From the NCBI GenBank assembly GCA_977017575.1, contig CDRNVI010000056.1, positions 310,001 through 374,000 of the forward strand: 64,000 nucleotides of DNA, read 5' to 3'. Numbering within the stretch: position 1 is the first letter of the stretch; each line of letters opens with the position of its first letter. The notes under the pieces were generated by a model that was given only the letters and a program-made list of their open reading frames with translations, did not search any database and was not told the origin of the DNA. The position numbers were made by a program, and so were the translations under genes. Positions 17,965 to 56,790 of the stretch are shown here, piece after piece. Origin of the DNA: Paramoeba atlantica (lineage: Eukaryota > Protista > Discosea).

Positions 17965-19207
17965 TCCATTATGCTTTTGTGAAGACCCAAGTGCACGCGT
18001 GAGCCGCCCAGGAAAGGTGCGAGGAGCCAACTTACCACAAGAATACGAACTCGCACGATTTTTTCAAAATATTACAAACCCTAGATCTTCATAGAAGACG
18101 TCCACGTTTGCGTGTGAGTGGGATTGTGTGACCTGTGATCAAGACTTAAAAGTGGAGCGCATTAAAGCTTCTTATTCGTATGCTGCAAAAAAACTGGAAG
18201 GATCGATTCAATGGGAATACCTGTGTCACACAACACGTAAATTTTATCTGTATCGCAATGAAATTACTGGAACTGTGTCACTCGACCTTCTTCCCTCCCA
18301 ACTGACTGAGTTTGACGTAACATACAACGCTTTTTCGGAAATTGGATTTAACGCATTTGCCTGCAGCTATGGAAGCACTTTTCTTATCCAGAAACATGTT
18401 TCAGAGACGTGTGGATCTTACCCATCTGCCTTTGACTTTGACAAATTTGCATAAAGATACAGTTTCTGTACCTTGTTGCCCTTCCTTTCTTTTCCCGGAA
18501 ACGGGCATATTCTTACTTTTAAATGCCCGTTTCCGGCTGACGGCTAGCTGGAACTGTCCCTCTTTGTCGCGGAAGTAGGGGACGCACTTCGCACTCCTCA
18601 CCCCTCGCCGGCTCGCTCTCTTCGAGTGAGCTTTCTTCCCTCCCCGGCTCTCCCCTTCTCGTGCTTTCTTCTCCCGGGAGCTATGCGCCATGGTGGCCTC
18701 CATTGAGGACCACTGGGCGTGCTACAGCGGGAGGACACGTTGTATGCGTGTATAGGGGATGCGAACTTGCCCCCCTCTCTCCCTACATACTGTAGCGAGT
18801 GCGGCGGTAACGGACCTCCCCATGATGCATCATGATCCACGGTAGACCATCTGACTACATGAACCCACGGCTTGACCGTGTTGCAGCATGAACCATGGCT
18901 ATACGTGCTGTAGCATGACCGATGGGCGACTCGTCTCCTACCTCGCACTCCACTCTCTGTGTGACACCCGTCGTATGCGGGTCATGCGCCGATGGTATCG
19001 GCCGTCACACAGAGAGACGTACCTCTGCGCCTCGAGCGTATGATGTCATATATGAGTTCTAATCAGTTTTCTGGGGAGCTTGACCTCACTCGTTTACCCA
19101 AAAATATGAAATGCTTACAAATGTCGCACAATCGTTTTAGTGGACCGCTTGATTTGCGGTACTTACCGTTATCCATCAGAAATCTCGTGCAAATGTCGTG
19201 CAAATAG
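17965..19207 (+). pseudogene. LRR type A copy 3 (stop, frameshifts, interrupted by SL-capped insertion)
   Basis: Paralogue of 15891-16589 with TAG at ~18091 and a 601-bp insert between ...ACAAATTTGC and ATGAGTTCTAATCAG. Confidence 0.85.
18451..19051 (+). other. Retroposed SL-capped RNA fragment
   Basis: Begins ATAAAGATACAGTTTCTGTACCTTGTTG (no GT donor after it) and contains strong hairpins. No poly(A); 2 bp (GA) of the target apparently deleted. Confidence 0.8.
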
Positions 19208-37204: not shown

Positions 37205-37405
37205 ATGCGGAGGTGGTGGAAATTGGCACGGCGGGCGGAGGAGGAGTTGGCATCACGGTCTTCTTTTTCCGGCGGGCAGGAGGGAGCGGCAAAATCTCAG
37301 GAGCTACTCCTGATTCTTTTGCTTTGGAGCGTGTGAACACTCCCATGAAAGGTAAAAAAAGTAAATAATCAACAAGGTACAGAAACTATATCTTTATCGT
37401 TAAAG
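37205..37405 (-). other. Retroposed SL-capped mRNA 5' fragment
   Basis: CTTTAACGATAAAGATATAGTTTCTGTACCTTGTTG (37405-37370), then a 5' UTR and ATG GGA GTG TTC (MGVFTRSKAKE...). Confidence 0.8.
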
Positions 37406-40681: not shown

Positions 40682-42167
40682 TTGGCAATGTTCCTGGTAG
40701 ATTCTAACTGGCCGTGATACCGCTAATTTTTTGTCCAGTCGCGCATCGTTCCGTCACGGACGCCTTTCATGACGTCCTTGTGCTTGGGATTAAGTGGGCG
40801 CCGTGACCTCTGGTAGCTCCTGCATTTTGCTTACCCTCGCAATCAACTAAATATTTGGAACCGTCCCGACGGCATTACTGTTTTTCTGCACTATAATCCA
40901 CTGAATTCCCTGAGTTTCAAAGGGTACAATACGCGTAATCAGGTTACATTATGCATTATAAGGGTGCGAGTATTATGCGTTACAAGGGTGCGTGTGCCGC
41001 GGTCTGTTACAGTACACCCCTCCGTCTGCGTAAAGAGGCAGTTTTGGCCTAAAACTCGAGTAAATACTCGAGGTATTTTCACCCAAAAAAGTTAGATGTT
41101 CAAGCATGGGTCATTTTGGGAGGTCAAAGTAAAGGAATATTGCATAAGTATAGGAGTATTGCATAAGTGTAGGAATATTGCATAAATTTTGTCCCCCGAC
41201 CCCTTTATATGAGATCTCTGATTCTGAAAAATACATAGAAGCCATGTGGAGATCTACACTTATACTACCTAAGAACCCTGTCTTTTTCAAGTTTATGAAC
41301 AAAGTTTGGCCAGACTAGAGACGAGACGTTTGTTCCAAAAAAGTTTCGTTTCGACGACCTCATTTCGTGCTTCAATACGAAGCAACAGATGTAGCAGATT
41401 CCCACTGAAAAGAAATCTCCGTGCACGAAGTTGACTCCAAGATAGCAAGCGCATAGGTAGGCATTTCTCGTTCAGGGAGATACGGTTTCTTTTCAGTGCG
41501 AACCTGCCACATCTGTTGCTTCTCCCTCTGTCTCCCTCGCCCCTTTATGCCTGGATTCGGGCAAAGTTACCCTTCCTTGTATGATTTTTCGGCTTGGGTG
41601 TACGTTCGCTGATTTCTCAACGAAAATCCGGATTTTCGTTGAATACTCAACGATCGGATATTTTCGAGAGAGAAAATGAAAAAAATTTCAACTTGGCGAC
41701 CAAAATGTTAAAAAAAGTATTTTTTTAAAATCGTTTCCCCTATTGCACGTTGAGAGCTTGGGACCTACACTGGCTTTCTAGACCGTTGTTTTCACAAGAT
41801 ACTCCCCCTGTCGTTAATAATCATAATCTTAAAAAAATTATCATTCTATGTGGTGAAAACTCTTAAAAAATTATCAACTTATTTTCATGCACGCCGGACT
41901 TTCTTACAAAAATTCTTGTGTCCTAAAAACAACGTTTTTTGAACTAAAAAATTATCAACTTATCTCCATGTTTTAGACCGTATTTTCGTATTTATTTTTC
42001 CGTTACTTCTCGATAATCGAAAAAGAAGTGCCCATTAGATGAATCGGGCTTCATTAAAAAATTTACAAGCTTTGGTGGACGACCATTTCAACGATAAAGA
42101 TACAGTTTCTGTACCTTGTTGAATTATTTTCTATATTTCATCCTTTTTCAGGTACGCGGTTCGTTCT

Positions 42168-45100
42168 ATGTCAGGCGAAGACCACTTTGAAGAGCCATCT
42201 CCTATGGATGACGATTCGTTTTTGCATGAGGAGGCGACTCATAAAACAGGATCCTGGGACCAGTTCGCGGGTAATGCGCATCTCATTAAACAGCCGAGTA
42301 CCTACAATGAACTACTATACACAACTCCTATACCTGCGAATATTCCTCATGACTGGTGCAAAAATGCTGCTTTGATTTCCCACGAAAAACCGACGCCTGA
42401 TACAGGACGCGAAGATGGCAGCGATGAAGAATCAAATCACTCTCGTGTGCTTATCGGCCCAGATCACAACACCCAATCACCACAGTCTGAAAAGGATTCT
42501 GTCGCAAGGAAGTTCTCTCGACGTCGAGTAGCCACTATACCTCCCTGCGCTAAAGGACATATTCGAGGCATCATAAAAACCACCAAGACGCGAGAGAAAA
42601 CCACGCCCATTAGAGGCGAAGCGTCGGACCTTAGGGCACACGACAAGGACCCATGCGATAGAGGAGATTCTCCTGCAATGGAGCTCGATCAATCCGCTGG
42701 GACCGCCGTTCACGAACAAACTCCCCCTTATTTCCCGCTGTCGCAGCAACAAGGAACGTTCCCAGCTAACAGGTGTGAAGAAGAAGTTGACTCAGCGGAA
42801 GTGAGTCAAAAACAACTGGAACATGGCCCCACCAGCTCACAAGATCCACCCCTACCCTGCAATAGGGTCGACGCTCGAGAGTGCCCAGCCCAGGGATGCT
42901 CATGGCGGAGCTTACCGCATGGCGGGTCGTGGCAAGCTTTCTATAACCACGTCGCTTGCCGGCATGGAAGCAGCATTCCTGCAGAGTGGTGGGAGGGGGA
43001 GGGTCGCTTCGTATGTTCCTCTTGCGGGCGTAACTATGATAAAAGCAAGCGTTCATCTCACTCTCATAGCTGCCAAGCAACAAAGGCCTCCTCATTACCC
43101 GAACCTCACGCCGAAACCCTTTCTGAGGAAGACAGCCCCACCCTGGTGGATGGAACCACGCAGCTCGAGCTTCCATCTTTATCCAATATCTGCTCACTAC
43201 CCCTTAGTACGTGCAAAGACGTACCGCATCGATGCCGCCAGTTGTGGGGCGAAATTCTTACAGAGGCCATGGATAACGCCGTCAAAGAAAATACGCTGCA
43301 GTCATGGACCTTGTTGGCCATGTTGCCTAAATGTGTCCTTCCCGCCCCGCGCCGTGGAGGGCGCAAAGGTCACATGGCTTACGCTTCCCACGCCTACAGT
43401 TGCATGCAGCGTTGGCTTGCGTTGGATTATTCCTCCCTATGGCAAGAGGCCACGACGAACTACCGCAAAAAGAAAGTAACTCCTACCGAGGATAGTGATG
43501 AAGATGAAAAAGCAGCACTAAGGGCAGAACTCCTTGCTCGACAGGGAGAATATTCCAGAGGCATGGCTGCTCTAACGTCAGACCCCATGGCTCCGGACGA
43601 CGACGACACATTCTCTAAATTACAAGAAAAGCACCCCTGCCGTTTGCTCGTTCCGGGGGCCGCCAACTTTTTCCCCGCAGCAGAGCCCCTGGAGTTGGAT
43701 GAATCTGAAATCGCGAAGGCAATCAAGGGCTTTCACAGAGGCTCCTCCGCGGGTACCTTGGGATTACGCCCCGAGCATTTACAGGCAGCGCTCCTTACCC
43801 ACGGAGGCAAGAACACAGACCCACTCGAATCCCTTACGAAGCTCGCTAATCATCTCCTCGCAGGAAAAGCACCAAAGGAAGTACAGAGTCACTTTGCGGG
43901 AGCCCGACTGTGTGCCCTAGAGAAAGGTGAAAACGACGTTCGCCCAATTGCCGCCGGGGAAACTTTGCGACGGTTAGTGAGCAAGGCTGCATGCAACGCA
44001 GTCAGGTCCAAGGCTAGAACTCTTTTTGCAGGACGGCAATTTGGTGTGGCTACCCCAGCTGGGAATGAACGCATTATCCACATGTGCCGCTTGGCCATCT
44101 CATCAAACATGGACTGCTCCAACTTTGTACTCTGCAAAGTTGACCTACGGAACGCTTTCAACAACGTGAGCAGGACTTGTTTTCTTCCTCTAGTCCAAGA
44201 GCACTTCCCAGAGCTATTCCCATGGATAAGCTGGTGTTACTCGAACCCCAGCTCCCTCACCTATGGACTCCGATCACTTTCTTCTGAAGAGGGAGTGCAA
44301 CAGGGCGACCCTTTAGGACCGCTACTCTTCTCGCTAGTGTCCTTAGCGCTCGCAGAAGCAATTGCTCTTCAGGCTAACCTCTTTGCCCAGTTATGGTACC
44401 TCGATGACGGCGTCCTCATTGGACAAGCGCAAGACGTTAGGAACGCCCTCGACACGATTGCCCGAGTAGGTCCACAATGGGGTTTACATCTTAACATGTC
44501 TAAATGTGAGATCGTTACACCCCCGGCATCGGCACACCACGCCTCCGAATTTCCAGATATCCCCTCCAATAAGATCAATGTCCACGGCAATTTCGACATC
44601 CTTGGGAGCCCGGTGGGATCGCCAGAACATTGCTCAGAGTACCTCGAGACACATGCCATAGGCCCCGCGGAGGACACGCTTGACGCGATAGCCACCATCC
44701 GGGACCCACAGGTCGCACTTGCCCTTATCAGACAGTGTGCTGGGTTTTGCAAGATGGTGTACGCTCTGAGAAGTACACCGCCCCAAGCCATAACCCATCT
44801 ATGCACCCGACTCGACGGCTTTCTTATGACTGCTACCGAAGCAATAATTTGCCCCCTGGATCGCCACGCGCGATCTCAGGTACAGCGTTTGAAGCGGCAC
44901 GGCGGTTTTGGATTAAGGTCCGCAGCGTTGCACGCCACGGCCGCCTACGTATCTTCCGTCGCTTTCTGTGCGGCCAGAGACTCATGGAACCCCACTGACG
45001 CAGATGGATTCGCGGAAGCTGTCAGGGATATCAACAAGAAGGCCGGAATATCTTTACTTGACTCGCGAGGCCGTATCCTCACAGCGCCGAACGCCCCTTG

Positions 45101-46160
45101 CGAAAAAGCAGTTGGCAGCCCTTTCTCCCATAGAAAGAGGAAACGCCCCCTAGGTGTCATCGATCAGCCTCCCTCGGAGATCTGCCTACCCCTGCGCATA
45201 ACTTCCCGCACCATGCATACACCTGAGGAAATACACTTTTCTACACCGCTGTACGCCTCGGAGGATTGTGCTGATACGACCCCCCCGCAATGGTTGAAAG
45301 GGAAGATCCCTCGCCAGCGAGACATCAGCTACGCGATCGCGGCCCACGATTTCTCCCAATCATACGAAATGTCAGATGTGCGGACACGAGCACGATGGAT
45401 ATCTCAGTGCGGTAAAGGGGCAAGCAGCTGGGCTTTTGTAACCCCGTCTAAGGACATGGGGTATTCCTTTACCCCTACAGCATTTCGAACCTTGGCCCGT
45501 TGGTGGTTAGGGATCGATGTTTACCCTGAAGAAGGGAAGTGTCCTATGCCGAAATGCCCTCTTCCACTCGACACAAAAGGGGACCACGCATTGTCTTGCA
45601 AGCACGACAACGGAATTATCGCGAGGCACAATGCCGTGGCAGATCACTTCACGGACCTTTGCAGCAGAGCCAAACTGGCCCCACAACGGGAGAAAAGTCT
45701 TGGCAACAGAGGCCCAGGGGGGGGCCTCACCAGACCTGGCGACGTATACCTGCGCAGTCTTTTCTTGGGGAATCCCATCGTGCTTGACTTCGCGGTCACC
45801 CATGCTCAGCAACTAAAATATACGGACAAAGTCCGGAACGCTAGCTGGGTAACCGCGGGGTCGTTTGCCGAGCATTATTCCTCCATGGAGAAGGGTAGGC
45901 AGCGCCGGGAAGCCGTTGACGCCGGGTGTGACTTTACGGCCATGGTGGTCGAAAGCTATGGCGCCTGGAGCCCCAGTGCTTCAGCAGTGATCCGCAAAGT
46001 TGGGGAACGTCTCTCACATGCCTCGTGTGGGTTATTGACAGAGGGGGAAGCCACGAGCAGAATCTTTACGGAGCTGAACGTCACCCTCATGCGCCTTCAG
46101 GCGCGCATGATGGTTACTCGTTTACTTCCTGAGGATCCGCTCTCTCCTACGGAGGTGTAA
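42168..46160 (+). CDS. LsmAD-like + C2H2 ZnF + reverse transcriptase + CCHC + restriction-like endonuclease polyprotein
   Basis: WDQF..N..L..S.Y.E.LYTT; CPAQGC..HVACRH; RPIAAGETLRRL; KVDLRNAFN; GVQQGDPLGPLLFSL; WYLDDG; C..C..DTKGDHALSC; RHNAV; RPGDV..LDFAVTH; VVESYGAW. Confidence 0.95.
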   Translation: MSGEDHFEEPSPMDDDSFLHEEATHKTGSWDQFAGNAHLIKQPSTYNELLYTTPIPANIPHDWCKNAALISHEKPTPDTGREDGSDEESNHSRVLIGPDHNTQSPQSEKDSVARKFSRRRVATIPPCAKGHIRGIIKTTKTREKTTPIRGEASDLRAHDKDPCDRGDSPAMELDQSAGTAVHEQTPPYFPLSQQQGTFPANRCEEEVDSAEVSQKQLEHGPTSSQDPPLPCNRVDARECPAQGCSWRSLPHGGSWQAFYNHVACRHGSSIPAEWWEGEGRFVCSSCGRNYDKSKRSSHSHSCQATKASSLPEPHAETLSEEDSPTLVDGTTQLELPSLSNICSLPLSTCKDVPHRCRQLWGEILTEAMDNAVKENTLQSWTLLAMLPKCVLPAPRRGGRKGHMAYASHAYSCMQRWLALDYSSLWQEATTNYRKKKVTPTEDSDEDEKAALRAELLARQGEYSRGMAALTSDPMAPDDDDTFSKLQEKHPCRLLVPGAANFFPAAEPLELDESEIAKAIKGFHRGSSAGTLGLRPEHLQAALLTHGGKNTDPLESLTKLANHLLAGKAPKEVQSHFAGARLCALEKGENDVRPIAAGETLRRLVSKAACNAVRSKARTLFAGRQFGVATPAGNERIIHMCRLAISSNMDCSNFVLCKVDLRNAFNNVSRTCFLPLVQEHFPELFPWISWCYSNPSSLTYGLRSLSSEEGVQQGDPLGPLLFSLVSLALAEAIALQANLFAQLWYLDDGVLIGQAQDVRNALDTIARVGPQWGLHLNMSKCEIVTPPASAHHASEFPDIPSNKINVHGNFDILGSPVGSPEHCSEYLETHAIGPAEDTLDAIATIRDPQVALALIRQCAGFCKMVYALRSTPPQAITHLCTRLDGFLMTATEAIICPLDRHARSQVQRLKRHGGFGLRSAALHATAAYVSSVAFCAARDSWNPTDADGFAEAVRDINKKAGISLLDSRGRILTAPNAPCEKAVGSPFSHRKRKRPLGVIDQPPSEICLPLRITSRTMHTPEEIHFSTPLYASEDCADTTPPQWLKGKIPRQRDISYAIAAHDFSQSYEMSDVRTRARWISQCGKGASSWAFVTPSKDMGYSFTPTAFRTLARWWLGIDVYPEEGKCPMPKCPLPLDTKGDHALSCKHDNGIIARHNAVADHFTDLCSRAKLAPQREKSLGNRGPGGGLTRPGDVYLRSLFLGNPIVLDFAVTHAQQLKYTDKVRNASWVTAGSFAEHYSSMEKGRQRREAVDAGCDFTAMVVESYGAWSPSASAVIRKVGERLSHASCGLLTEGEATSRIFTELNVTLMRLQARMMVTRLLPEDPLSPTEV

Positions 46161-46224
46161 ACGTTCGTAAGCGTCGACCGCGCCCCTTTTGGCACGGGAA
46201 CACGTTTGCGCCCATGAAGAGCTG

Positions 46225-46473
46225 GTCGGGATGCTGGTCGAGTCGACAGAGTCTATACTCACGCCTAGCCCGCGAGGGCTAGGTACCCCAAGTGAGGTAG
46301 TACACGGGTAGTGAATCTCCTCCCCGTCGGCCAGCATCCTGTTTCGTGACCGTGTCGCTGTCGACACAGGCCCGCGCCTGCGCCCTCCCGTATAGCAAGG
46401 GAAGGGTTCACAAGTCAGGCCGTGGAGTGGTCGAAAGACCCGGTCCGGAACGCGCGAATGGATTGGGTCTGGA
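46225..46473 (+). repeat. Conserved structured 3'-UTR module of the CRE-like family
   Basis: Reverse-complement copies at ~5010-5237 and 5335-5421; stems GGATGCTGGTCGA/TCGGCCAGCATCC, CCTAGCCC/GGGCTAGG and GGTC-GAAA-GACC. Confidence 0.85.
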
Positions 46474-47041
46474 TTGCTTGTTTTTATTTTTACTGTGTCT
46501 TATTTGTCGTATATACTTAGGGGAGATTGAATTGCTAGTTTTGGGCTGAGAAAAAAGAAAAAGAAAATATACTTCTGTGGAAATGAAAAGAATTGCTAAT
46601 TTGATTGCTTGTTTTAAATTCATATACCCAAAAAAAAATTCAACTTGGCGAAAAAAATGACAAAAAAAATATTTTTCCAAAATCGTTTCCCCTATTGTAT
46701 TTTGATAGTTTGGGACCTACACTAGCTTTCTCCTCAGTTGCTTTCGCAAGGTATCCCTTCTTCGAACCGTGGTGCGCCCCTCAAAATGACCCAATTTTGA
46801 CTAAAAGAGGTGAAAAAGTATTTTTCAGACCCCAAGGGGCCTTCTTGTGTTGAAAGAATGGTATGGTTGGAGTCGCATTCTCTACCCAATACGTTCGGTA
46901 GGCTTTCATTCATGCCTACGAGTGATTTCCCATGCGCAAATGTCGGATTTAGTGCTCTGACAGCAAAAATACGCGAAAATCACCCCATTTTTACTCGAAA
47001 TTCGGCTATTTTTGGCTATAATCTTTCCGTTTTCCAGGCTA

Positions 47042-53588: not shown

Positions 53589-56500
53589 CTACGTTGTTGA
53601 GTAGTGTTCAGCAAAAGATCCCGCAGCCACCCAGCTAGCATTCCGGACAGAGTCCAAATACTTTAGTTGCTGTGCGTGGGTGACTGCGAAGTCTAACACC
53701 ATGCCACTTCCCAGGGTGCAATTCGGGAGAAACACGTCAGCTGGTCTGGTGAGACCCCCTCCTGGACCACGATTTCCCAGGCTTTTCTCCCTTTGCGGAG
53801 CCATGTCGGCTTTTCTGCAAAATGCTGTGAATTGCTCACAGACCGCGTTGTGACGGGTGGTGAGGCCATGCCCGTTCTTACATAACAATGCATGTTCCCC
53901 ATTTTTCTGCAGAGGTAATGCGCATCCCTTCGCTGGGCAAGGACGATCTTCTTGATAGATGTCGGATCCCAGCCACCAGCGGGACAACGTGCGGAACTCT
54001 GTTGGTGTGAAGGCGTATCCTTTGCTCCTAGAAGGCGTCACGAAATCCCAGCGACCTGCTCCCTTACCCGACTCTGAAACCCACCGTGCGCCAGTGCGAG
54101 GGTCAGCCTGCTCGTATGCTGTGGTAAATTTCTGCTGTGAGATAGCCTGGCTGAGTTGCTGCTGTCGAGGGATGACCATCTCCGGCGCGGTTGCCCTGTC
54201 CGCTTCCATATTGTTTTGAGTGCTCCGTGGGCGTTTCCTTTTCGGGAGGAAGTTGTGATGGTGGCCTGAGTATGGGGGTGGCTTGTCCTGCTTGAGTGTG
54301 CGCCCCGTGCTGTGATCCACTAGCGCTACTCCTGCTTTACGGTTTACGTCTTGTACCGAAATGGCGAATCCATCAGCCTCTGTAGGATCCCAGTCGTCTA
54401 TGTCGGCGGCGTGCGCGACGGAAGAAACGTAAGCGGCTGTCGCATGGAGTGTTGCAGACCTAAGGCCGAAACCTCCGTGGCGGTTCCTTCGTTGGATTTG
54501 GTCACGTGCGTGGGGTTCCAGGGGGAAAAGTGTCCACTCGACAGCTTTAAGAACGGTTTCGTCTAGTAGGCTACAAAGTTAAAAAAGAGCCCGTGGGGGT
54601 GTGGTGTGGAGAGCGTACACCATTTGGCAGAAACCAGTGCACTGGCGGATGAGGGCGATGGCGACTTGTGGATCGCCTATTAGCCCTATTGCTGCGAGAG
54701 TCTCGCGTGCGGGTTCAATGGCGTGAGACATTAGGAACTCCGCGCAGTGCTCCGCAGACCCAATCGGGGATCCGAGAATATCGAAATTCCCATCAACACG
54801 AATTTTGGCGGTGGGTATTTCCGGAAATAAAGTTGTGTGATGGGCTGAGGCAGGTGGCGTTATTATTTCACACTTGTTCTGATTCAGAAATAGCCCGCAT
54901 TGTGAATCAACCTCGGAAAAAACATCAAGCGCCTTTCGAACCTCCGCCGCCTCCCCCATGAGAACTCCGTCGTCCATGTATGACGTCGTCCATGTATGAA
55001 CTCCGTCGTCCATGTTCCTTCTGGCGTTGTTGAACGCATTTCTGAGGTCCACCTTACAGAAAACAAGACTGTCGCTCCCCTAGTTGTTTAGCATTGTTTT
55101 CCGGCACAGATGAATTACTCGTTCGGCCCCCGCGGATGCAACCACACCATACTGTCTTCCCCGGAATAAAATTTCAGCCTTCTCCTTTACGGCGACGCAT
55201 GCCGCTTTGCTTACTAGACGTCTGAGGGTTTCGCCCGCTTCTATGGGTCGGACATCTTCTTCACCTTTCTCCAGAGCGCAGAGATGGGCTCCTGCGTAGA
55301 ACAGTTGTACCTCTGGCGGTGCCTTTCCTTGGAGCATGTGGTTCACGAGGCGAGTGAGGGCCGAAAGAGGACCCACCTTCTTGTCGGCGTGTTCCAAAAT
55401 GGCAGCCTGGATATGTTCTGGACGTAGACCCATTGTTCCGGCAGAAGACCCTCTGCGAAAACTTTCGACCGCTTTCCAGACTTCCACTTCCTCCAGACGC
55501 AGGGGATTACCCCCAATCGGTGGAAGATCGTTCTCAAGAGGGTTTTCGTGAGGATTTGGGTGCTTTTCTAGAAGCTTCGCAAGAGTCTCCTCGTTGTCCG
55601 GCGCCATGGATGCTGCGGTTAGAGCGGCTAGTCCCCTAGAGTATTCCCCTCGACGTGACAGTATTTCTGCCCTGATTGCCGCTCTTTCTTCTTCGTTTTC
55701 GGAATTTCTAGGCTTGGAGCGTTTTTTGGCGTGATCTTTCAGGGCCTGTTCCCAGAGTAAGAGGTACTCTCCTGCCAACCAAAGCTCCATGTTTTTTTCC
55801 ACATGTGTAGAATATGACATACGAATATGTCTATGTCCTTTGCGTCCGCCTCGGTAAGGTGCAGGTAAGACGCATTTAGGGAGCATTGCGAGCAACGTCC
55901 ATGCCTCCACCGTGTTTTCTTGAACAGCAGAAGTAAAGACTTGTGTCAAAATGCTCGCCCACAGGAATGTGGGACGTCTTTACATGTACTTATGGGCAGT
56001 GCCCACACAGAGCTTAGCGTTGGGAGCAGGTTTTCCGGAGGAACATCCGCTGCGTTTCTAGGACATGTCGTTGGCCTAGGCGGGGTTGGAGATCTGACAT
56101 GGAGGTTGTGGCCTTTGCAGTGCTTGGGGTGAGACTTTTCCTTGTTTTTGTCGTAGTGCCTGCCGCAATCCTTGCAGAGAAATCTTCCATCTCTCTCCCA
56201 CCCGTCTGTGGGTACGCTTTCGCCGTGTCGGTGGGCCACATGGTTGTAACACGCTTGCCATTGTCCACCATGTGGAGGCGTCTTCCAAGAGCATCCTTCC
56301 GCTGGACATACTCGTTGCGTGCTGTGTTGTAGAGACGGTAACGGGTTTGCGTTCTTGCGCTTGTTTGGAGAAGAAATTTTCGCGCCAGAGACCTCCGGCG
56401 GGTTTCCTGCGCTCGCATCCACAACGCGAGAGTGATTGGTCTCTTCATCATCCGTCACTCTCCCCGTGTCCGGTGTGGGATTCTCTCCAGCGAACTTGAC

Positions 56501-56790
56501 GGCTCTTTCTGCCCAGTGTTTCGGTATGTTCTTGGGAATAGGTGTCGTGTATAAAAGTTCATTGTAGGAGCTCTGTCCAGAGATTAAGTGTGCGTTACCT
56601 GCAAATTGGTCCCAATCACCCGTGTTGTGAGAAATCTCTTCCTGGCGGAAAGAGTCGTCGTCCATGGGCAATGCATTCACGTCGAAAAGATCGTCTTGTG
56701 GCATGATTATACCCTCCTCCTGGGGAAAAAAGTGGGATAATTAAAATGTTGTCAACAAGGTACAGAAACTGTATCTTCATCGTTAAAGTT
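53589..56790 (-). mobile_element. Second SL-capped CRE-clade retrotransposon (degenerate, internally deleted, 3'-truncated)
   Basis: SL 56790-56753; ATG at 56704; LsmAD-like, ZnF, RT (RPIEAGETLRRL, DLRNAFN, YMDDG) and RLE (RPADV..LDFAVTH) fragments with stops and frameshifts. Confidence 0.9.

Follow-up and report, generated by a model that had tools for sequence, protein, structure and literature searches.

The window, as we call the whole DNA stretch analysed here, comprises 64,000 nucleotides of an assembly deposited under Paramoeba atlantica (GenBank assembly GCA_977017575.1, contig CDRNVI010000056.1, positions 310,001 to 374,000 of the forward strand). On its plus strand, at window positions 42090-46638, it contains an mRNA-like non-long terminal repeat (non-LTR) retrotransposon of about 4.55 kb with a putative restriction-like endonuclease, whose protein begins with an LsmAD domain of the ataxin-2/PBP1 type. 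The element consists of a spliced-leader (SL) sequence at its 5′ end (42090-42121), a 46-nt 5′ untranslated region (UTR; 42122-42167), a single open reading frame (ORF; 42168-46160), a 469-nt 3′ UTR (46161-46629) and a closing poly(A) tail of nine residues (46630-46638). The SL was delimited using close copies, RNA-type contigs and the SL core. The 5′ UTR, which is common to the close copies, and the poly(A) tail were read from the sequence; copies match as far as 46629, where the homology of most of them stops.

Translation and Pfam analysis of the 1330-aa ORF indicated four parts. The LsmAD domain occupies aa 21-101 (42228-42470) with a short N-terminal extension common to the host PBP1, as delimited by hhalign, BLASTP, and conservation. 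It is followed by a linker (42471-42881) that varies in length and is poorly conserved in pairwise comparisons across lineages, and by two C2H2/CCHC-type zinc-finger motifs at aa 239-302 (42882-43073), which were read from the translation alone and whose conservation was 0.49-0.60. The reverse transcriptase (RT) core was located at aa 586-794 (43923-44549; PF00078, 55.2 bits, E 1e-14). A CCHC motif and a PD..D-type restriction-like endonuclease region are placed at aa 1125-1212 (45540-45803; conservation 0.54-0.71); this putative endonuclease region aligned with the C-termini of relatives and was assigned from motifs in the translation, not from a profile. The relatives of the ORF in the PDB were R2 retrotransposon proteins only, with weak matches to 9nl3 and 9nl2.

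A second, diverged and broken copy lies on the minus strand at 53589-56785, with its SL at 56785-56754, its ATG at 56704, and its LsmAD region at 56647-56393. It retains an ORF fragment (56704-55946) with W31 at 56614, and its RT and endonuclease pieces are in separate frames. A reading made earlier from the letters of the window (the sequence-only reading) had quoted an LsmAD-like residue pattern at aa 30-94 of the 1330-aa RT ORF, and the translation of 42255-42449 on the plus strand gave this pattern as quoted. It had also described the same pattern, followed by a much shorter linker, in the second copy; both points held: the linker measures about 145 aa in the first copy, compared with about 40 aa in the second.

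The SL sequence was found four times in the window against zero expected (42090-42121 and 18459-18472 on the plus strand, 56754-56785 and 37376-37389 on the minus strand), and two of the four coincide exactly with the 5′ ends of the two LsmAD elements. The SL core, ACAGTTTCTGTAC, is a euglenozoan SL core and is closest to the 'Euglenozoa 14' type (PMC3795323). The host is a euglenozoan-type, SL-using protist. The matching of all close copies starts at 42090 or up to three nucleotides before it (42087-42090), the upstream flanks differ among copies, and in every close copy the SL start precedes the ATG by 78 nt. In a probable RNA run (X5), contigs shared just 42090-42121/42130 with the element and diverged thereafter. 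The position of the SL at the exact 5′ ends of both elements suggests that a trans-spliced RNA is the template for retrotransposition. Since the SL-defined 5′ end lies upstream of it in every close copy, the LsmAD coding sequence is an integral part of the element 5′ end and not flanking host DNA. Directly upstream of the element, 41796-42086 is a separate dispersed repeat with about two dozen genome copies at 84-91% identity.

The identity of the N-terminus was investigated with profiles. Against the Pfam LsmAD model (PF06741; curated cut-off, 25 bits), the window copy alone scored 16.1 bits (E 0.016) and the second copy 16.8 bits, both under the cut-off. Sister lineages in the same genome passed it with 28.9-34.4 bits; in one of them (locus L044), a 1401-aa ORF holds LsmAD (28.9 bits) and RVT_1 within one frame. 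A profile of eight element lineages (A1) aligned by hhalign with a canonical set of 16 LsmADs (A3) at 99.8% probability and E 7.6e-28; the 81 aligned columns span the whole domain. When A1 was searched against 1.84 billion representative proteins, 783 matches were obtained at E<=1e-3. Among 75 lower-ranked matches that were checked with Pfam, LsmAD was present in all 75, SM-ATX in 45, and PAM2 in 11; P0125, a match with 22 Ig repeats, was a false positive of the profile search. All eight element lineages share residues W, Q, F, N, L, Y, T, T, and EE without exception, and the same columns do not vary in the canonical domains either. Lineages F and G retain the helix with the A..IA.EI pattern; in the window lineage, this helix has diverged. 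On these comparisons, ORF aa 21-101 is a true, full-length LsmAD homologue. The LsmAD profile match predicted by the sequence-only reading was thus borne out by the profile-profile alignment and by the sister lineages, and not by the window copy taken alone.

Chance resemblance, or a host PBP1 fragment that happens to adjoin one element copy, would account for the weak Pfam score of the window copy alone. The hhalign E value of 7.6e-28 speaks against it, as does the recurrence of the domain at one and the same position, within the SL-defined 5′ end, in at least 150 copies from different loci; the genome-wide copies, the reciprocal profile retrieval, and the hhalign result refute this explanation, whose probability we regard as negligible.

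The element domain shares with the LsmADs of ataxin-2, Pbp1, and trypanosome PBP1 homology over the whole domain, the invariant W, Q, F, N, and YTT residues, a nearly invariant S-T-Y motif, and an acidic EE..S.V end. Unlike in these proteins, the element LsmAD stands alone at the N-terminus of an RT protein, without SM-ATX, PAM2, or long disordered regions, and a TPDTG motif replaces the canonical 'H..EERG' stretch. Pfam detected no SM-ATX (Lsm) domain in the element ORF, whose LsmAD begins about 20 aa past the initiator Met, and a regular-expression scan of nine element ORFs found no PAM2-like motif, which is present in the host PBP1 at aa 436. A sequence search for a solved LsmAD structure returned chance-level matches only (tachylectin-2 and neuraminidase). 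The AlphaFold2 model from the eight-lineage alignment had a predicted local distance difference test score (pLDDT) of 63 and a predicted template modelling score (pTM) of 0.23, with short helices only, and was too weak for a fold search; this pLDDT fits the published weak folding of the isolated LsmAD.

The host PBP1/ataxin-2 gene was identified at L041:4848-7733 and encodes SM-ATX, LsmAD, and the PAM2-like motif LNPNARAFTP. In BLASTP, aa 19-62 of the window ORF were 57% identical to the host PBP1 over 44 aa (E 3e-15), and the similarity reached residues just upstream of the Pfam boundary. Against A1, the host PBP1 scored 74 bits, and all other proteins shown to carry Lsm (SM-ATX) scored 57 bits or less. 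Scores of 78 bits (P0143) and 57 bits (P0153) were obtained for two unnamed fragments in which the domain has the same position. In a maximum-likelihood tree of 97 LsmADs over 93 columns, 22 element domains, the host PBP1, P0143, and P0153 were on one side of a branch with 96/96 support; 60 ataxin-2 representatives and a family of PDZ-LsmAD-RRM proteins were on the other. The nearest LsmAD to the element domain is therefore, from alignment and tree, that of the host's own PBP1, in line with the proposal of the sequence-only reading that a host messenger ribonucleoprotein (mRNP) domain had been captured. LsmAD is a general feature of ataxin-2 across eukaryotes. This rules out transfer in the reverse direction, from the element to the host. 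Taken as one joint explanation, it is quite probable that the domain was captured from the PBP1/ataxin-2 of the host lineage and that the element has it without SM-ATX and PAM2.

Two further observations concern LsmAD proteins encoded by cellular genes. A cellular protein family carries two LsmADs (P0133, which is KAJ9472136.1 of Diplonema papillatum, P0141, P0144, P0148, and P0156), together with PDZ in P0133, P0141, and P0156 and RRM in P0133 and P0141, a non-ataxin architecture found at least in diplonemids. These PDZ, double-LsmAD, and RRM proteins resemble the element in having LsmAD outside the ataxin-2 architecture in the same broad protist group; they differ in being cellular multi-domain proteins that are not mobile, and the tree places their LsmADs in a well-supported group of their own. 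In addition, an AT-rich contig of the assembly (L043, G000:C163:163000-172999; 35% GC vs 45-47% elsewhere) contains a canonical ataxin-2 gene with several short introns, and could derive from another organism within the assembly or from a genomic compartment of very different character.

The spread of the domain was then determined in the 45.7-Mb assembly. The PF06741 search gave at least 150 matches, about 100 of them above the cut-off; most lie in 1200-1450-aa open frames and span model positions 5-71 of 72, and about 68 of the 150 scored copies are in frames that stay open for 1100 aa or more. A tree built on the RTs of 62 relatives placed the LsmAD-bearing ORFs (9 of 9) in one clade with a Shimodaira-Hasegawa-like approximate likelihood ratio test (SH-aLRT) support of 100, which fits a single capture. 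LsmAD was absent from seven N-terminally complete ORFs of the sister RT clade, and neither profile detected it in about 208 more distant RT relatives, including D. papillatum proteins named 'SLACS', sponge elements, and metagenomic elements. P0034 was rejected as a close relative lacking LsmAD; its gene call begins at an internal Met just after the domain. We concluded that the domain was captured once and then retained in every N-complete member of the clade, so that copies with and without the domain, a comparison proposed along with the original observation, divide by clade.

Conservation along the ORF was compared among nine full- or near-full-length ORFs. The mean pairwise identity was 0.61 for aa 21-60, which is about that of the RT core, 0.20 for aa 1-20, and 0.08-0.29 for the linker. 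The Nei-Gojobori dN/dS ratios across the domain were 0.17 (lineages A-B), 0.06 (A-C), and 0.09 (F-G), with synonymous sites saturated between deeper lineage pairs. The element LsmAD is thus under purifying selection, as had been supposed from the pattern shared by the two window copies. A neutral relic of one capture, with no function for the element, would be compatible with the decayed central helix of the window lineage and with the window copy falling under the Pfam cut-off. It agrees poorly with the dN/dS values of 0.06-0.17 (read with the saturation in mind), with an island of conservation beside a freely evolving linker, and with the keeping of the domain by all N-complete members of a clade in which RT identity has dropped to about 55%. 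We consider such a passenger domain very improbable.

The remainder of the element resembles CRE/SLACS/CZAR- and R2-type elements: one ORF encodes zinc fingers in its N-terminal part, an RT, and, towards the C-terminus, a CCHC motif and a putative endonuclease. It differs from them in having an N-terminal LsmAD, its own 5′ SL, and a poly(A) tail. The nearest named relatives were D. papillatum proteins auto-named 'SLACS 132 kDa protein', with 36-37% identity; looking for trypanosomatid SLACS, CZAR, and CRE sequences by way of a Diplonema relative yielded none. The hallmark of CRE elements, a fixed site in SL-RNA genes, was not observed: the SL is the element's own 5′ end and the DNA upstream of it differs between copies. 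The CRE-clade label used at first would, on this comparison, derive only from distant relatives auto-named after SLACS.

Non-LTR retrotransposons of various clades have captured accessory domains, among them esterase, PHD, RRM, and protease domains. The LsmAD element is alike in that a host-type module is fused to an RT protein and maintained, and its RT relatives carry UCH, OTU, Ulp1, PHD, SAND, Prim-Pol, and MLLE domains (precomputed or tested Pfam matches). It is unlike these cases in that LsmAD was described in the literature searched only as an ataxin-2-family feature and that the donor gene is identifiable in the same genome. In two sister-clade elements, P0024 (aa 16-136) and P0032 (aa 3-103), an N-terminal Prim-Pol-like domain (PF09250, 27-31 bits) takes the place of LsmAD.

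What the domain may do for the element was considered from published work on ataxin-2 and its relatives. The isolated human LsmAD is weakly folded and does not bind RNA (PMC11898529). In trypanosomes, PBP1 belongs to an MKT1-LSM12-XAC1-PABP complex, which increases expression from the mRNAs it is bound to, with the attachment of XAC1 left open; tethered PBP1 raises reporter expression, and LSM12 and PABP are recruited by PBP1 (bioRxiv 10.1101/2020.03.02.973057). LSM12 and Mkt1 were rejected as candidate partners of LsmAD, as LSM12 binds the Lsm domain (PMC11166328) and yeast Mkt1 contacts Pbp1 elsewhere than LsmAD (PMC12345631). LsmAD in PBP1 is thought to be a protein-contact site, and since the isolated domain is poorly folded and does not bind RNA, an adaptor role is the most likely one: the element LsmAD may link the element ribonucleoprotein (RNP) to the host PBP1/PABP mRNP network, a reading that we favour tentatively, with confidence somewhat short of an even balance.

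In the proposed mechanism, the likeliest route of capture would be that the RT switched templates to PBP1 mRNA at the element 5′ end, after which SL trans-splicing would supply a new cap and leader. The element LsmAD would fold on binding and occupy the same host partner as the PBP1 LsmAD. The ORF protein, acting in cis on its own capped and polyadenylated RNA, would then be plugged into the PBP1/PABP mRNP network, with possible gains in stability, in translation, or in the assembly of the RNP close to the poly(A) tail, the site at which target-primed reverse transcription begins.

Related elements bear on this adaptor role. Two sister elements on JGI metagenome contigs, P0021 (aa 1557-1620) and P0022 (aa 1079-1143), carry the MLLE domain of PABP (PF00658, 47-49 bits) after the endonuclease. 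In pairwise BLASTP, they were 41-42% identical to the window ORF across the zinc-finger and RT region, and a literature search found no paper combining MLLE with a non-LTR retrotransposon. The presence of two modules of the PABP-PBP1 node in related poly(A)-tailed elements points to recruitment of this node. That retroelements of the group have hijacked it repeatedly, with LsmAD in one clade and MLLE in a sister lineage, is conceivable, and we hold it as rather doubtful. If it were so, LsmAD would be an autonomous protein-docking module and its partner a host factor needed for retrotransposition, and the element, as a natural 'LsmAD-only' construct, could reveal the function of LsmAD in ataxin-2. 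Near the N-terminus of P0021 there is, in addition, a 2A-like peptide, DVEKNPGP.

The same homology and selection data would be expected of a competitive mimic, in which the element LsmAD titrates the partner of the PBP1 LsmAD or displaces PBP1 and so keeps the element RNA from PBP1-dependent granules or repression. A decoy would require only what the element has taken, LsmAD without Lsm, PAM2, and the disordered condensation regions, and the structured domains of fly ataxin-2 oppose granule formation (PMC7946432). However, a decoy acts in trans and has to be abundant, whereas the ORF proteins that retroelements make are as a rule scarce and cis-acting, and the MLLE in the sister elements looks more like recruitment than competition. 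We regard mimicry as unlikely. Less likely still is a role in RNA handling, in which LsmAD and the zinc fingers together bind or chaperone the element RNA within the ORF protein. LsmAD aids Lsm folding and AU-rich RNA binding in vitro (PMC11898529), and the element domain lies upstream of conserved zinc fingers, but the element has no Lsm domain to assist and the linker that leads to the zinc fingers is free to vary in both sequence and length.

Several points weigh against capture and adaptor use of the domain as proposed here. In X5, the sole probable RNA data set, no element transcript was seen, the match being to the SL only, and none of the runs recorded as RNA contained the element. No partner of LsmAD is known. 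The window copy alone remains under the Pfam cut-off at 16.1 bits, and the central helix of its lineage has departed from the A..IA.EI pattern. The LsmAD tree leaves the branching order within the element/host group unsettled. As to age and spread across species, several database proteins were identical to loci of this genome, so that the LsmAD-RT proteins found outside the assembly are probably derived from this organism or from a near-identical assembly.

A literature search found no paper combining LsmAD with retrotransposons, in agreement with the statement of the sequence-only reading that no such fusion had been described. In its accessible part, a 2026 survey of ataxin-2 chimeras makes no mention of fusions to RT or transposons, and the Diplonema genome paper merely lists SLACS-type RTs. 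That such elements capture host domains is known from other cases; in the literature searched, LsmAD as the captured module is new. LsmAD is the most conserved signature of ataxin-2/PBP1, which are studied intensively for SCA2 (spinocerebellar ataxia type 2) and ALS (amyotrophic lateral sclerosis). In the element, it has been freed from Lsm, PAM2, and the disordered regions and has yet been kept under selection for a different client, which argues for a self-sufficient interaction module; the element LsmAD may thus be a clean bait for finding the LsmAD partner. With the donor gene still in the same genome, this is also a datable capture of a host domain, and SL trans-splicing can render a capture at the 5′ end expressible at once. 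The findings suggest that SL-capped, polyadenylated elements gain by joining the host poly(A)-mRNP machinery, with which the MLLE-bearing sister elements agree.

Fragments of the element were also found in tandem arrays with a period of about 2.28 kb on two contigs (G000 contigs C21:1-12000 and C22:137000-156000; loci L010-L024). The array unit combines pieces of 3′ UTR with poly(A) runs and a 5′ fragment headed by the SL, which still encodes LsmAD in short frames of 168-224 aa. The distal 3′ UTR (46224-46629) was 97-100% identical even among lineages whose LsmAD proteins are just 86% identical, for example in the C21 and C22 arrays, which suggests either that lineages have exchanged 3′ ends or that an element recognised by the RT is strongly constrained.

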